Positions 16,805-26,540 of a DNA stretch of 47,224 nt are shown piece by piece. The translations under genes and the position numbers were made by a program. Under the pieces are notes generated by a model. It was not told where the DNA came from and did no database searches. It was given only the letters and a program-made list of their open reading frames with translations. The stretch is from Guillardia theta CCMP2712 (Eukaryota > Protista > Cryptophyta), in contig NW_005434469.1 in the NCBI RefSeq assembly GCF_000315625.1, positions 1-47,224 on the forward strand, in the 5' to 3' direction. Position 1 is the stretch's first letter. Every line of letters starts with the position of its first letter.

Positions 16805-17049
16805 ATCGATGAAGCTGTCTGCTCGCCTCGAGCTCCTCCCTTGTTTTGTCGTCCTCTGCCCATACCATCTGTCTATCTCTTCCACTCTCTGCCTCCAAGT
16901 GTATACATTGACATCACCAGCGCAACAAGATGGCGGGAGAGACGGTTTACCTGGGATCACGGTATCCGTACGACCGTGACTTCTTTCCTTGGGACTGCAA
17001 GGCAGGGTACAGGCTGAGGATGGACAAGCGCTGCAGTGAGCGGGTATGA
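16805..17049 (+). pseudogene. Truncated 3' remnant of the secreted LRR/Cys-rich gene family (copy R1)
   Basis: Encodes NKMAGETVYLGSRYPYDRDFFPWDCKAGYRLRMDKRCSERV-stop, homologous to the C-terminus of the copies at 17566 and 24825; preceded by a degenerate PASASIDI-like sequence with an internal deletion. Confidence 0.8.
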
Positions 17050-17565
17050 GAGGAGCGAGGAAGAGGCATGAGATAACAACAAAAGTCAATGCTATCAATT
17101 ACGCAATACGGAATGCAGGTCAAGGCAGCAGCAGGAATGAAGGCAGGAGCAGTGAGCAGGGTTGGGGAGGGGAGGGGCAGGAATGGAAGCTGGCAAGGGC
17201 AGGAGCAGGAGCAGCACACAGCATGCGTCGCAAGATGTGTGTGGAGGAGGAGGAGGAGGCTTAGTGCTTCTGCTGCATGCGCTACCGTAAGATCAGTCGC
17301 CGCAACAGACTCGGTTGCTGCATTTCCTTGCCTTGACAAATCCGTTACAATCCGTAACGGATATCGCGTCCTCCCTTTCTGGTCGTTGGTACCGCATGGT
17401 TTGGCTCTGTTTCTTTTTTTTAAGAGTCATGTTGGGCAGCAGTTGAGACAGATAACAATATGTATGAAGGATTTTGCTGTCCTCTTTGATCTCCTATACA
17501 AAATTCTGAGGCAAGCTGTCATAGAGCTCACTTATAAAATCACTTTTCGGAAGTTGCACTTCAAT

Positions 17566-18665
17566 ATGCCGCGACGATTCATGGCAGAGAAAGCAGGAGC
17601 AGGAGCAGGAGCAGGAGCATGGTTGGCGATGCTACTGGTCATGCTGATGCTGCTACATCAGCCCGTGCAAGCTCAGAGAACTTGTGGTGTCTGCACCTTC
17701 CAGGTCGTCAGCGGACAAGTTCTTAACAAGACGGTAGGAGGAGACTGCGGGACTGGTTGTACAGTACTTGATCTCGAAGACTTTGGATTCAGCAGCATCG
17801 CAGACGGAGCTTTGACAGCCTCAGACCTTACCAGCATGACACAGCTCTATATGGGCACAAACCAGCTGACAAGCATACCTACAAGTATCAGCGAACTGAC
17901 CAGCTTGACGTATCTCTACCTGAACAACAATTATTTGACGAGCATACCAGATGGCTTCTTCGATAAGCTCACAAATCTGACACGTCTCGATCTAAGCGGA
18001 AACCAGCTGACAAGTCTACCTAGGAGTATCAGCGGCCTGACAAGCCTGCAGCAACTCGTCCTAAAAACAATAAGCTCACCGTTGTCTCTGCTAGCAACTT
18101 TGTCGGACTTACAAGCCTGCAACAGCTTTATCTCTCCAACAACAACATCTACTGCATCGATGCTGCCGCCTTCGCCTCTATCCCTGCAAGTGCATCCATC
18201 GACATCCGCTACAACAACGCCAGCCTCTGCGTGCATCCCTCCTGGCCTGCCTCTGTACAGTATGATACCGGCCTCCAGAACTGCTCTGACAACACCAGCC
18301 CCTGCTTGACGTGCAGCCAAGCCGGAGACCCTCTGCTCTGCTCGTGCCCTGCTGGCTTCTTCCCTCAGCTCTCTCTCGGGCTCTACACCTGCCAGCCTTG
18401 TCCCCCAGCCTCCTTCAAGTCTGCCCCGGGCACGGCAAACTGCTCCGCCTGCTCCACCAGCCCCTGCGACGTGGGGCAGTACCGGCAGGCCTGCAACAGC
18501 ACGAGGGACGGGGAGTGCGGGGAGTGTACGAACAAGATGGCGGGGGAGACGGTGTACGTGGGGTCAGGGTATCCGTACGATCAGAACGCCTGTGCTTGGG
18601 ACTGCAAGGCAGGGTACATGCTGAGGATGGACGAGAGCTGCTCGGCCTACTGCGAGATGGTGTAG
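17566..18665 (+). CDS. Secreted leucine-rich-repeat protein with Cys-rich (TNFR/GCC2-GCC3-like) tail, copy 1; one frame break near 18063-18067
   Basis: Signal peptide (WLAMLLVMLMLLHQPVQA), Cys cap, LRRs (LYMGTNQLTSIPTSISELTSLTYL, YLNNNYLTSIPDGFFDKLTNLTRL...). Adding one A to the A5 run restores LVLKNNKLTVVSASNFVGLTSLQQLYLSNNN and reads into the Cys-rich tail ending SCSAYCEMV. Confidence 0.85.
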
Positions 18666-19070
18666 GAGGGGAGGACGAGAAGAAGAGAAGGCAGGGCCGT
18701 GTTGAAGTCTGACCTGTGACATTCAGTAAAGGAGAAGGTGTTCAGGGTTTGTGGCTGTAACTTGTTATGAACTTCGATATATCACTTGACTCTCAAGTGT
18801 TGGGTTTTGTGCCAGTGCCATCTACGTCTTGTCCCCACGTACGATAGTGTGACTGCGGGCCGCGAGCGAGGCCCCGGATCAGCACTGAGTGCGACGGCCG
18901 TCTGTCTTGCTGCTGACTCGCATTCAGAGTGGGTTAACTACCGTGATCCGATGATAGTGCGAACCAACCCTCATCCTATCAGTGATACCTGAGCTGGCAC
19001 GCAGGACCAGACTCGACCCCCGCGCCATGCCGTGGCCGCTCTCAGCGAAGGAGGGAGACTACCGTACTGG

Positions 19071-23698: not shown

Positions 23699-24825
23699 TC
23701 ATACCATCTCGCAGTAGGCCGAGCAGCTCTCGTCCATCCTCAGCATGTACCCTGCCTTGCAGACCCAAGCACAAGCGTTCTGATCGTACGGATACCCTGA
23801 CCCCACGTACACCGTCTCCCCCGCCATCTTGTTCGTACACTCCCCGCACTCCCCGTCCCTCGTGCTGTTGCAGGCCTGCCGGTACTGCCCCACGTCGCAG
23901 GGGCTGGTGGAGCAGGCGGAGCAGTTTGCCGTGCCCGGGGCAGACTTGAAGGAGGCTGGGGGACAAGGCTGGCAGGTGTAGAGCCCGAGAGAGAGCTGAG
24001 GGAAGAAGCCAGCAGGGCACGAGCAGAGCAGAGGGTCTCCGGCTTGGCTGCAGTAGTCAGAGGTGCTGGAGGAGGGAGTCACGCAGAGGCTGGTATGTCA
24101 GAGCAGTTCTGGAGGCCGGTATCATACTGTACAGAGGCAGGCCAGGAGGGATGCACGCAGAGGCTGGCGTTGTTGCCGGTGATGTAGATGGATGCGCTTG
24201 CAGGGATAGAGGCGAAGGCAGCAGCATCGATGCAATAGATGTTGTTGTTGGAGAGATAAAGCTGTTGCAGGCTTGTGAGCTTGTCGAAGAAGCCATCCGA
24301 TATGCTCGTCAAGCTATTGCCATAAAGGAAGAGACTCGTCAGACTTGTCAGGCCGCTGATACTTGTAGGTAGACTTGTCAGCTGGTTGTAGCCAATATTG
24401 AGAAACGTCAGGCCTGTGAGCTTGTCGAAGAAACCATCCGATATGCTCGTCAAGCTATTGCCATAAAGGTTGAGATCCGTGAGACTTGTCAGGCCGCTGA
24501 TACTCGTAGGTAGACTTGTCAGCTGGTTTCCACCGAGATCGAGAGACTTCAGGCTGGTGAGGTCTGAGGCTGTCAAAGCTCCGTCTGCGATGCTGCTGAT
24601 CCCTTTCCTGCTCAGTGGAAGATTTGTACAATTAGTACCGCAGTCTCCTCCTACTGTCTTGACAAGAACTCCATTGCTGACGTTGAAGGTGCAGAAACCA
24701 CAAGTTGTCTGAGCTTGCACGGGCTGATGTAGCAGCATCAGCATGACCAGCAGCATCGACAACCATGCTCCTCCTGCTCCTGCTCCTGCTCCTCCTGCTG
24801 GCTGTGTCATGAACCGTCGCAGCAT
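23699..24825 (-). CDS. Secreted LRR + Cys-rich-tail protein, copy 2; frame break (or 35-nt intron) near 24048-24097
   Basis: [39 protein letters not shown] signal peptide, LRRs with GFFDKLT, ORF stops at 24079, and the Cys-rich tail continues in another frame (23699-24082) nearly identical to copy 1. Confidence 0.85.
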
Positions 24826-25769
24826 GTCTTAGCTGCCTTTTACTCAAAGTTTTAAAAACTAAAAATCACTACCAGGACAATCAGGGGAGTAGAGGAGCCT
24901 CTCGGTTTTATATATCACTATATAAACATGATTGATGGCGTTAGAGTCAACTTCTCAACCTTCGCTGCCAGATTTGAAATTGTTACATGGGAACATCATC
25001 GCTTGTTCGAAACCAGATCTCGCAAATAGGCTCACGAGTTTGAAATGTCGGTACCATAAATCAGTTTTAAAACTTGTTAGTACCAAGAAATACATTGTAG
25101 GTGCTACTGCTAGTGGCTGCTGGTACTGCAGTGAAAACATTTTAGTGACTGGCACGGTAGGGGTGACTCGGCTACGGGTACTTTGCTGGGCAAATCCTGG
25201 GCAGAAGGCAGCAGATGCTCCGATAGGGGTGGGGGTAGTAGCTCCCTTTTTAGGGAACTGCGACGGTCAATCCCTACGCACGACGGGAAGGGCGATGAAG
25301 GAGGGAAGAGGTGTGGGGAATCACTGATTGAGAGGAGGGCTGAAGCAGCCACGTGCTGCATCACTGTCATGTGCAGGGCGAGCGAAGGCAACGGGAAGAA
25401 GAGTAACTGTGACATGTCATGAGGTCATTGACGCAACACTGGGGCTGAGGAATGCATAGCGAGAGATACAGATACAAGACATGGAGGAAGAAGGGAAAAG
25501 GTAGGAACCGAGGATTAGAGTATGAGCAAGGAACGAAGGTCGATTATGTTTACCAGGGGAAGTAAATAACAAACACAATATAACTGATTGTGCTGACGAG
25601 TTTTGGACCCTCCTGCACCAAGAGGTTGCCTGGCTGTAAGGGACTCAAGTGGAAGAGAAGTCAAGTATGGTTGACTTGTGATGATAGAGAACGTAGTAAA
25701 CAGCACGACCAGTGGTCAGACTCTGATAGCTGCCCAGTCTCATCCTCATTCCTCTTCTCGTGTCTCCTC

Positions 25770-26540
25770 CCCGCTCCTTCTGCCTTGCAGTCCCAAGGAC
25801 AGAAGTTGTTCGTACACTCCCCGCACTCCCCGTCCCTCGTGCTGTTGCAGGCCTGCCGGTACTGCCCCACGTCGCAGGGGCTGGTGGAGCAGGCGGAGCA
25901 GTTTGCCGTGCCCGGGGCAGACTTGAAGGAGGCTGGGGGACAAGGCTGGCAGGTGTAGAGCCCGAGAGAGAGCTGAGGGAAGAAGCCAGCAGGGCAATGC
26001 ACACAGAGGGTGGCGTTGTTGTTGCGGATGTCGATGGATGCACTTGCAGGGATAGAGGCGAAGGTGGCAGCATCGAGATAAAGCTGTTGCAGGCTTGTAG
26101 ACAACTGAGGACGAGTTGCTGCTGATACTCGTAGGTAGACTTGTCAACTGGTTGTAGCTAGAGAAGCTGATCGTAAAGGTAGAGATCCGTCAGGCTTGTC
26201 TCAAGTTGCTGAGCTGATCGAAGAAGCCATCTGGTATGTTATTTAACCAAATATTGTAGTAAAGGTAGAGATCCGTGAGACTGGTGAGGCCTCGGCTGTT
26301 ACCTGTGTAGCGCAAATCAAGAAACGGCTTGTAAGCTTATCGAAAATGTCATCCTGCTGATACTTGTTGGTAGACTTGTCAAAGTCCTGCTCCTGCTCCT
26401 GCTCCTGCTCCTGCTCCTGCTCCTGCTCCTGCTCCTGCTCGCTGCTGCTGCTGCCTCCCTGCTCCTGCTCCTGCTCCTGCTCCTGCTCCTGCTCCTGCTC
26501 CTGCTCCTGCTCCTGCCCCTGCTGCTCGTGCTGCTGCTGC
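25770..26540 (-). pseudogene. Decayed, deletion-riddled copy of the LRR/Cys-rich gene (copy R2)
   Basis: ~185 nt of the Cys-rich tail identical to copies 1 and 2 (CPAGFFPQLSLGLYTCQPC...CGECTN), preceded by broken LRR pieces (ataccagatggcttcttcgat, tgacaagtctacctacgagtatcag, ttcgataagcttacaagcc) and an expanded (GCAGGA)n run like the AGAGAG leader. Confidence 0.8.

Follow-up and report, generated by a model that had tools for sequence, protein, structure and literature searches.

A probable germline paralog cluster for a secreted LRR/Cys-rich protein with a variable concave face and a near-identical tail in Guillardia theta

We analysed a stretch of 47,224 nucleotides from Guillardia theta CCMP2712, referred to here as the window, and consider it likely that it holds a germline paralog cluster for a secreted LRR/Cys-rich protein, in which the contrast between a variable and a constant part stems from ordinary multigene-family dynamics. 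The encoded protein consists of a signal peptide, five to seven LRRs of 23/24 residues between a 4-Cys N-cap and a 4-Cys C-cap, both lineage-specific, and a TNFR/ephrin-receptor-like Cys-rich domain as its tail. Non-allelic gene conversion would repeatedly homogenise the 3' module (C-cap plus tail) among the convergent copies 1 and 2, the pseudogene copy 3 and a paralog on scaffold C67, and the LRR array would turn over via duplication of 141-nt repeat units. The exposed xxLxLxxNx positions may evolve at, or somewhat above, the neutral rate, with the scaffold under purifying selection. Functionally, the concave LRR face may bind an extracellular ligand, for example a microbial, prey or mating-surface molecule, and the Cys-rich domain may act as a constant docking or dimerising part.

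The locus and the state of its copies

Four related pieces lie in the window, all of which the initial annotation had located correctly: copy 1, copy 2, a decayed copy 3 and a 120-nt tail fragment, fragment 4. The features are as follows.

16921-17040, + strand: fragment 4, a tail relic with 86% nucleotide and 70% amino acid identity to the tail
17566-18665, + strand: copy 1 (three-frame translation; Pfam LRR_8, LRR_4)
18063-18067, + strand: A5 run at which copy 1 loses its frame (alignment, three-frame translation)
18312-18665, + strand: tail of copy 1 (117 aa, 15 Cys), a Cys-rich domain of TNFR/ephrin-receptor-like type
20177-20454, no strand: assembly gap 1, intergenic, with GAG- and CAG-rich simple sequence on its flanks
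21779-21878, no strand: assembly gap 2, intergenic, inside a (CT)n microsatellite, with (CT)n on both sides
24825-23699, - strand: copy 2 (read mapping; Pfam LRR_8 E = 2e-32)
23695-24052, - strand: tail of copy 2, 99% identical to the copy 1 tail and a putative gene-conversion tract
24095-24096, - strand: reference assembly error in copy 2, one base missing; the corrected frame reads ...NCSDNTSLCVT... into the tail
24268-24549, - strand: two tandem 141-nt super-repeats in copy 2 (repeat search), each made of a 23-aa and a 24-aa LRR
~26381-25661, - strand: copy 3, decayed (repeats, alignment, translation; zero RNA-like depth)

Copies 1 and 2 are convergent, and each side of the locus consists of a fragment followed by a gene. 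Both assembly gaps sit between these two copies, in simple-repeat DNA, and neither is crossed by any copy or real reading frame. Because two gaps intervene, the distance between the copy 1 and copy 2 blocks, and the orientation of one to the other, depend on the scaffolding.

We found that copy 2 is a working gene, intact, intronless and transcribed. The 1-nt frameshift that interrupts it is a reference assembly error: an extra T behind 24095 is present at full depth in the DNA run X2 (144.6/144.6) and in the RNA-like runs X1 (6.48/6.48) and X4 (5.7/5.7). Since these three runs carry the missing base, copy 2 is an intact gene, encoding 375 aa in a single exon once that base is counted. The X1 and X4 RNA-like contigs cover 23638-24795 without a joint, and 82-89% of the copy 2 words are present in the RNA-like runs; RNA depth is nil over the intergenic DNA and copy 3, where DNA depth is ~82x. 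The runs X1, X3 and X4 were taken as RNA only from their small contig totals and zero intergenic depth. Expression of copy 2 is low, with 8 raw RNA reads from ~6% of run X20.

In copy 1, a signal peptide is followed by an N-cap with 4 Cys, 5 LRRs and a cap LRR, a C-cap, again with 4 Cys, and a tail with 15 Cys. Its A5 run in the reference sequence is one base shorter than in copy 2, the C67 paralog and a metagenomic relative, and this frameshift may also be an assembly error. The NCBI model GUITHDRAFT_148345 (P0002, 263 aa) represents part of copy 1 and jumps the frame break via an invented intron. Only 10-12% of the copy 1-specific words occur in the RNA-like runs, as compared with the 82-89% for copy 2; this paralog is silent or nearly so, and frameshifted in the reference. 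The two near-complete copies of the initial annotation are present, although each carries a 1-nt reference frameshift that had been read through silently.

In copy 3, some two LRRs remain in broken form, followed by a truncated C-cap and a 191-nt stretch of tail (25806-25996) that is 100% identical to copies 1 and 2; deletions come next. RNA-like depth is zero over 25380-26300, where DNA depth is mostly 58-139 with one low bin (6.7 at 25944-26037), and copy 3 is a decayed, untranscribed pseudogene. Fragment 4 corresponds to the last 40 tail codons, lies ~530 nt upstream of copy 1 and has no LRR part. It keeps the 'DRDF.PWDC' state found in the C67 paralog and the metagenomic relative, where copies 1 and 2 read 'DQNACAW'. 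Like copy 3, it is a relic of an older tandem copy.

Protein architecture and family membership

The LRR domain scores above the Pfam cutoff for LRR_8 (E = 2e-32) as well as for LRR_4 (E = 4e-25), and the tandem LxxLxLxxN solenoid repeats place the copies in the LRR superfamily. An AF2 model predicts a confident LRR solenoid (pLDDT ~85-97; ~90 over residues 50-240), and more than 400 PDB sequence matches to LRR proteins were obtained. A signal peptide and both N- and C-terminal Cys caps are present, as expected for the secreted, Cys-capped LRR protein first described. Behind the signal peptide there is no hydrophobic stretch, TM segment or GPI-like/hydrophobic C-terminus, in agreement with the initial annotation, which had seen no TM segment and no obvious GPI tail. 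On these sequence features, the protein is predicted to be soluble and secreted.

For the tail, Pfam returns TNFR_c6 at E = 8e-4 and Ephrin_rec_like at E = 2e-3. Neither passes the curated cutoff; TNFR_c6 scores 18.8-20.2 bits against a gathering cutoff of 29.4, short of what would place the tail in the TNFR superfamily. Its PDB match is to the TNFRSF9 CRDs (E = 0.06), its atlas neighbours are all Ephrin_rec_like/TNFR_c6 clusters (best score 0.89), and UniRef labels the copy 1 model 'TNFR-Cys domain-containing'. We regard this as a resemblance to TNFR only. There are 15 Cys in the tail and 23 in the mature protein, and the odd number is kept in all four intact or near-intact sequences. The module also ends non-LRR proteins and, because it occurs up to 33 times in giant proteins, we regard this TNFR/ephrin-receptor-like unit as a generic extracellular building block.

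Searching the G. theta CCMP2712 genome (87.1 Mb, 669 contigs), we found at least 200 LRR matches and 40 C-cap modules, with diverse C-terminal parts after the caps; many loci combine identical cap types with different C-terminal parts. Copies 1 and 2 share with the C67 paralog the N-cap CGxC(T/A)F...C...C and the C-cap N.I.CI...AF...N..LC.H.SWP...C. The copies belong to this lineage-specific, unnamed family of capped extracellular LRR proteins in G. theta, a large family of which they form a small subfamily. Additional members, whose existence the initial annotation had made a test of its reading, include the intact C67 paralog (438 aa, single ORF), the intact relative on a metagenome contig (374 aa), a 43%-identical protein with the architecture of copies 1 and 2 (P0130, 419 aa), and further relatives in Hanusia phi and others. 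Some transcriptome-derived relatives likewise read the tail out of frame.

Divergence along the gene and its explanation

The tails of copies 1 and 2 (18312-18669 and 24052-23695) share 99% identity over 358 nt. The number of internal differences, put at about two by eye, is exactly two: 18590 C/T, which is synonymous, and 18601 A/T, which exchanges Asp and Val; the last codon and the stop also differ. Across the five LRRs, on the other hand, the x positions of xxLxLxxNx differ between the two copies in 23/30 cases vs 17/90 elsewhere (Fisher p = 1.8e-8), confirming the concave-strand variation noted earlier. Likewise, the two super-repeat units within copy 2, 88% identical to each other, differ at 6/12 face residues and at 2/35 others.

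The comparison of dN/dS at concave and scaffold codons that had been suggested separates the two classes, with omega of ~1.4-1.9 at face positions vs 0.23-0.32 elsewhere in three comparisons. However, a face omega above 1 is weakly supported, since it reaches p = 0.036 (uncorrected) in one of the three only, copy 1 vs copy 2, where dN is near-saturated. Non-face positions and the tail appear to be under purifying selection because their omega (0.23-0.32) and dN (0.004-0.05), respectively, are low.

Synonymous divergence between copies 1 and 2 is mosaic: dS is 0.11 in the signal peptide and N-cap, 0.56 in the LRR core, 0.10 in the cap and 0.026 in the tail (core vs tail, Fisher p = 2e-9). The high core dS may in part be due to internal duplication, after which the repeat units compared need not be orthologous. 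The LRR core of copy 2 has diverged less from the metagenomic relative (dS 0.24) than from copy 1 (0.56). In the tails, by contrast, copies 1 and 2 are separated by a dS of 0.026, and each stands at 0.09 from that relative, which argues for concerted evolution. Against the C67 paralog, LRR dS is ~1.6-1.8 (saturated) and tail dS 0.14. Taken with the mosaic dS, this pattern argues that gene conversion homogenises the 3' module. Since DNA depth is ~3x single copy over the tail and single copy over the LRRs, no hidden copies are collapsed in the assembly. The gene conversion postulated by the initial annotation is thus borne out by the mosaic dS and the region-incongruent relationships, but it acts on the constant part: no LRR-diversifying conversion tract from the decayed copies was found, and the proposed diversification from them is not supported.

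One might instead see nothing but decay in the locus, with all copies being pseudogenes or dying duplicates and the variable face reflecting lost constraint. Such a reading would accommodate the reference frameshifts in copies 1 and 2, the near absence of copy 1 from the RNA-like runs, the two relics flanking the genes, the out-of-frame tails of transcriptome-derived relatives and the lack of significance, in two of the three comparisons, for a face omega above 1. We consider it unlikely, given that the copy 2 frameshift is missing in three independent runs and the gene is transcribed, that non-face positions and tail bear the marks of purifying selection, and that intact relatives exist on C67, in the metagenome and as the 43%-identical protein. 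A recent inverted segmental duplication, after which the tails would still be alike from youth and one LRR array would have been replaced from a distant paralog, is about equally improbable. Similarity between the copies ends within ~4 nt of the stop codons, and their 3' flanks and intergenic DNA are unrelated, despite the symmetric convergent layout and the low dS that extends to the signal peptide and cap (0.10-0.11). Moreover, the genome contains no other sequence that could have donated either LRR core, the C67 paralog likewise passes abruptly from saturated LRRs into a near-identical 3' module, and the 191 identical nt of the pseudogene fit repeated conversion better than a single duplication.

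The initial annotation had favoured an antibody-like secreted receptor family, which in its somatic form would resemble agnathan VLRs, whose germline gene has a non-coding insert between the leader with the 5' LRRNT and the 3' LRRCT with the stalk. On this view, individual cells would complete or alter an incomplete germline gene by copying in LRR cassettes from the flanking decayed copies. The short capped solenoid of 23/24-residue LRRs (a superficial likeness), the variable face and constant tail, the partial copies nearby, and VLRs and VLR-derived repebodies among the nearest solved structures by fold speak for it. However, no non-coding insert interrupts copy 2 or the C67 paralog, each of which is a complete germline ORF, just two fragments exist, one of them without an LRR, and a DNA search of the 87-Mb genome with both LRR cores returned nothing beyond the other copy (77-78%) and copy 3. 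Two RNA-like studies and a 2021 DNA run have no other letters over the LRRs of copy 2 (24299-24795), at a consensus level beneath which rare variants could remain; the sole gap in the contigs over copy 2 is the base missing at 24095, outside the LRRs, and LRR DNA depth is single copy. Designed LRRs, Leptospira LRR proteins, SHOC2 and LRRTM2 match equally well as or better than VLRs, and Pfam gives no LRRNT (PF01462) and no LRRCT (PF01463). Neither an incomplete germline gene, a flanking cassette library and somatic assembly, nor the vertebrate-type caps, stalk, GPI and multimerising end of VLRs were found. With transcribed LRRs identical to the germline, no cassettes, and different caps and tail, a VLR-like somatic system is largely refuted and, in our view, highly improbable, and the antibody-like interpretation is not supported either. 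We thus favour the germline paralog cluster.

Comparison with known systems

Tetrahymena LRR genes (PMC6564038) and brown-algal LRR-ROCO genes (PMC3341825, PMC11378527) form large, fast-evolving, lineage-specific families of candidate recognition receptors in protists that change by unequal crossing-over or shuffling of repeat units. These families employ one-repeat exon shuffling and many of their members are intracellular (ROCO), whereas the G. theta genes are intronless, encode proteins predicted to be secreted and would undergo conversion of a 3' module.

Similar to VLRA/B/C of agnathans, the G. theta proteins are short secreted/surface solenoids of ~24-residue LRRs with Cys caps at both ends and concave variation. 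Unlike VLRs, they have caps other than LRRNT/LRRCT, lack a Thr/Pro stalk and a GPI signal, and end in a folded TNFR/ephrin-receptor-like Cys-rich domain instead of a stalk with a multimerising peptide; by sequence, generic LRR proteins (LRRD1, Leptospira LIC proteins, SHOC2) are better matches than VLRs. In its Cys spacing, the tail weakly matches TNFR_c6 (PF00020), Ephrin_rec_like (PF07699) and the 4-1BB CRDs, with matches below curated thresholds. The G. theta protein has neither a transmembrane nor a death-domain part.

In plants, Cf-4/Cf-9 Hcr9 genes and PGIPs form germline paralog clusters with hypervariable, solvent-exposed xxLxLxx positions in some LRRs and near-identical C-terminal parts, and they evolve by sequence exchange between paralogs and diversifying selection. 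The plant proteins have another LRR subtype, other caps and no TNFR-like domain, and the lineages are unrelated. Receptor-like proteins of the Cf-9 type combine a plant-specific eLRR bearing LRRNT_2 with a transmembrane helix and a short cytoplasmic tail; we found no LRRNT_2 (PF08263) match and no TM segment in the G. theta copies. Only the mode of evolution is analogous. In that respect, the plant extracellular LRR resistance clusters would be the best mechanistic analogue of the pattern measured here.

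Locus layout and predicted protein architecture

The window makes up the first 47,224 bases of scaffold C205, and the protein database places its genes on a contig of 79,239 bases. Repeat finding, alignment and three-frame translation confirmed four related pieces in it. The two near-complete genes, copies 1 and 2, are convergent and lie tail to tail, with one relic upstream of each. The N runs between them, in simple-sequence intergenic DNA, are crossed by none of the copies, and the ORFs that span these runs are low-complexity artefacts. How far apart the two halves lie, and in which relative orientation, depends on scaffolding across both gaps.

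Related pieces and N runs at the locus
16921-17040, + strand: fragment 4, a tail relic of 120 nt
17566-18665, + strand: copy 1, near-complete gene
20177-20454: N run between copies 1 and 2
21779-21878: N run between copies 1 and 2, inside a (CT)n run
24825-23699, - strand: copy 2, near-complete gene
~26381-25661, - strand: copy 3, decayed

Two other stretches of the locus may belong to different genes. Between copies 1 and 2, an ORF at 19359-20729 (+ strand), broken by the first gap, has a non-repetitive coiled-coil-like middle with poly-Q/E/G tracts on either side and may be a real gene. Between copies 2 and 3, the stretch 25192-25379 has depth in two RNA-like runs (X1 and X4), and contigs at 25295 continue into sequence absent from the window; this may represent a repeat or another gene's exon.

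In full, copies 1 and 2 run from a signal peptide through an N-cap with four Cys (CGxCTF...C...C), five LRRs and a cap LRR bearing a four-Cys C-cap (NNIYCID...NNASLCVHPSWP...C...C) to a tail of 117 aa with 15 Cys. The LRRs alternate between 23 and 24 residues, a ...NQLTSLPTSISGLTSL unit being followed by a ...NSLTSIxDGFFDKLTxL unit, and they give strong Pfam matches to LRR_8 and LRR_4. As the initial annotation had stated for a TM segment, the encoded proteins contain no hydrophobic segment beyond the signal peptide and no hydrophobic C-terminus, which points to a soluble, secreted product. The number of Cys after the signal peptide is 23, an odd count, in all four intact or near-intact sequences.

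The tail gave only sub-threshold Pfam matches to TNFR_c6 and Ephrin_rec_like and a weak alignment to the cysteine-rich domains of 4-1BB (E = 0.06), while its nearest language-model neighbours fell throughout in Ephrin_rec_like/TNFR_c6 clusters. In the AF2 model of the closest intact relative the LRR solenoid is confident and the tail poorly defined, with a pLDDT of 40-70 that is too low for a meaningful fold search. Therefore, the putative TNFR-like assignment of the tail depends on weak sequence evidence.

The poly-Gly/Ala stretch of the leader of copy 2 is encoded by a GCAGGA repeat (24766-24800), where contig depth exceeds that of the neighbouring sequence by factors of hundreds to thousands and loose contig ends are numerous. 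The hexamer microsatellite occurs in great abundance in genome and transcriptome alike, and no short-read contig passes this position unbroken.

Reading frame and transcription of copies 1 and 2

By three-frame translation, the reference breaks the frame of copy 2 once, at 24095/24096. Comparing reads and contigs over 23500-26300, we found that an independent DNA run (X2) carries an additional base behind 24095 at full depth, as do X1 and X4, which come from different studies. Since this base restores the frame, copy 2 is an intact gene of 375 aa and the break is a 1-nt error of the reference assembly. A 17-nt GT..AG mini-intron that would also restore the frame is ruled out, because the reads have the extra base and no joint. 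Likewise, the RNA-like contigs cover 23638-24795 end to end with no joint, so copy 2 is intronless. RNA-like depth falls to zero across copy 3 and the intergenic DNA, although the DNA run reaches ~82x there; hence copy 2 is transcribed, whereas copy 3 is untranscribed. From ~6% of a run of raw RNA reads (X20), 8 reads mapped here, a number too small to judge how strongly or from which strand copy 2 is expressed, or to detect rare variants. A complete public model of copy 2 did not turn up.

At 23860, in the tail of copy 2 (- strand codon AGG, motif NSTRDGEC), the X1 and X4 contigs have A for T on the + strand, changing Arg to Trp in a motif kept across the family; the DNA run supplies only a paralog-type contig there. 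A further error of the reference, a difference between strains or one between RNA and DNA could each explain this site.

The frame of copy 1 is also broken once in the reference, at the A5 run 18063-18067. The database protein GUITHDRAFT_148345 (P0002), which is the gene model of this copy, spans the frameshift by an invented intron, at the cost of the last LRRs and the C-cap. The single GT..AG candidate that we examined by hand as an intron bypassing the frameshift (37 nt) is in the wrong phase, and a homologous-protein search for read-derived proteins across this position returned nothing beyond the NCBI model and the ORF of the window itself. The RNA-like runs contain 82-89% of the copy 2 words and only 10-12% of the copy 1-specific words; copy 1 is therefore silent or nearly silent in those samples. 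These results correct the public annotation twice, in that the assembly error is all that breaks copy 2 and in that the intron of GUITHDRAFT_148345 does not belong to copy 1.

Concerted evolution of the tail and divergence of the LRR core

Both contrasts that the initial annotation had drawn between copies 1 and 2 hold up. The Cys-rich tails, judged by eye to differ at about two internal positions, do so at 18590 (synonymous) and 18601 (Asp/Val). The variability ascribed to the LxxLxLxxN strand is equally real: over the five LRRs, 23 of the 30 residues on the face (the x positions of xxLxLxxNx, on the predicted concave side) differ, versus 17 of 90 elsewhere (p = 1.8e-8). Synonymous divergence (dS) between the two copies peaks in the LRR core (0.56); it is lower in the leader plus N-cap (0.11) and in the cap (0.10), and lowest in the tail (0.026; core versus tail, p = 2e-9).

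Two intact relatives extend this comparison. The C67 paralog, on another G. theta scaffold (438 aa, seven LRRs), differs from the window copies by a saturated dS of ~1.6-1.8 in the LRRs and by 0.14-0.3 in the cap and tail. The metagenomic relative (P0001, L066; 374 aa, from a metagenome contig) has a core dS to copy 2 of 0.24, versus 0.56 between copies 1 and 2, whereas its tail dS to them is 0.09, versus 0.026 between these two. Such disagreement between regions is the mark that non-allelic gene conversion leaves on a 3' module, and the concerted evolution of the constant Cys-rich part is clear. The pseudogene copy 3 takes part too: its tail has 191 nt identical to copies 1 and 2. A simple young segmental duplication would be an alternative source of near-identical tails; the similarity of copies 1 and 2 stops a few bases from their stop codons, which counts against it. 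In addition, the two 141-nt super-repeats of copy 2 share 88% identity with each other versus 65-77% with their copy 1 counterparts, and repeat-unit duplication therefore adds to the divergence of the LRR core.

We estimated omega on the face from Nei-Gojobori counts and Fisher tests on three or four sequences, scaled to the dS of the whole core. It was 1.4 for copy 2 versus the metagenomic relative (p = 0.35), 1.5 for copy 1 versus this relative (p = 0.19) and 1.9 for copy 1 versus copy 2 (p = 0.036, near saturation); away from the face it was 0.23-0.32. These values weakly hint at diversifying selection on the concave face, and relaxed constraint would fit them almost equally well. Should this weak signal of positive selection be borne out by further cryptophyte genomes, the family could reasonably be proposed as a candidate for extracellular recognition, about which, to our knowledge, nothing is known in this lineage.

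Family context and comparison with VLRs

Across the G. theta CCMP2712 genome (87.1 Mb, 669 contigs), the capped LRR cassette is common, with at least 200 LRR matches and 40 C-cap modules, and the C-terminal parts that follow it are very different: Ser/Thr/Pro stalks, a TM helix, Cys-rich repeats, more capped cassettes and other domains. A non-LRR protein on scaffold C16 (386431-387864, L011:280-1713; 478-aa open frame, 430-aa protein P0142) likewise terminates in the tail module; it has a signal peptide, six tandem CPAGEYFSxC..RDGxC repeats and, judging by a WWRIDLGG motif, probably a lectin-like domain. The tail is therefore a shuffled building block, and in giant proteins it occurs in up to 33 repeats.

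The LRR-plus-tail architecture itself is rare. Within G. theta, it was recovered in the C67 paralog and the genes of the window; the other occurrences are the metagenomic relative, a 419-aa protein at 43% identity, and fragments from Hanusia phi and another source. The H. phi protein P0003 carries its tail in the wrong frame (residues ~395-474; 49% identity to the shifted-frame G. theta tail, E = 2e-9), and in P0127 a frame switch is seen by eye close to the tail end (residues ~200-225). That several members are affected is notable; these are probably assembly errors or pseudogenes. Fast-evolving, lineage-specific LRR families are known in Tetrahymena (PMC6564038) and in brown algae (PMC3341825, PMC11378527), and a full-text literature search found no publication on this Guillardia family.

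The architecture suggests an extracellular binding function. A more elaborate scenario, which we regard as unlikely, is a cryptophyte germline family of secreted recognition proteins in which non-allelic gene conversion would keep constant a TNFR-like domain for docking or dimerising, with its conserved odd Cys, while the concave face would be under positive selection. The products would act as soluble pattern-recognition proteins or agglutinins for bacteria, prey or mates, and the design of a variable LRR plus a constant module would have been invented independently, without somatic rearrangement.

The initial annotation had gone further and proposed a protist antibody-like system resembling the VLRs of agnathans. 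VLRs and VLR-derived repebodies are indeed among the closest solved structures. However, designed consensus LRRs, LRRTM2, Leptospira LRR proteins and SHOC2 match the fold as well, and in sequence LRRD1, Leptospira proteins and SHOC2 outscore VLRs; what is shared with VLRs is therefore membership of the common 24-residue LRR class. Unlike in VLRs, the germline genes here are complete (copy 2 and the C67 paralog), and the caps and tail are of other kinds. No cassette library was found genome-wide, the DNA-level relatives of either LRR core being the other copy and copy 3 alone. Moreover, the transcribed and resequenced LRRs of copy 2 equal the reference, and the DNA depth fits the assembly, with the LRR region at single copy and the tail at about three collapsed copies. 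The antibody-like system was thus an attractive lead, and a wrong one: in place of VLR-like assembly, the cluster consists of ordinary germline LRR paralogs, and is a documented case, in an LRR family of cryptophytes, of a constant Cys-rich module evolving in concert.
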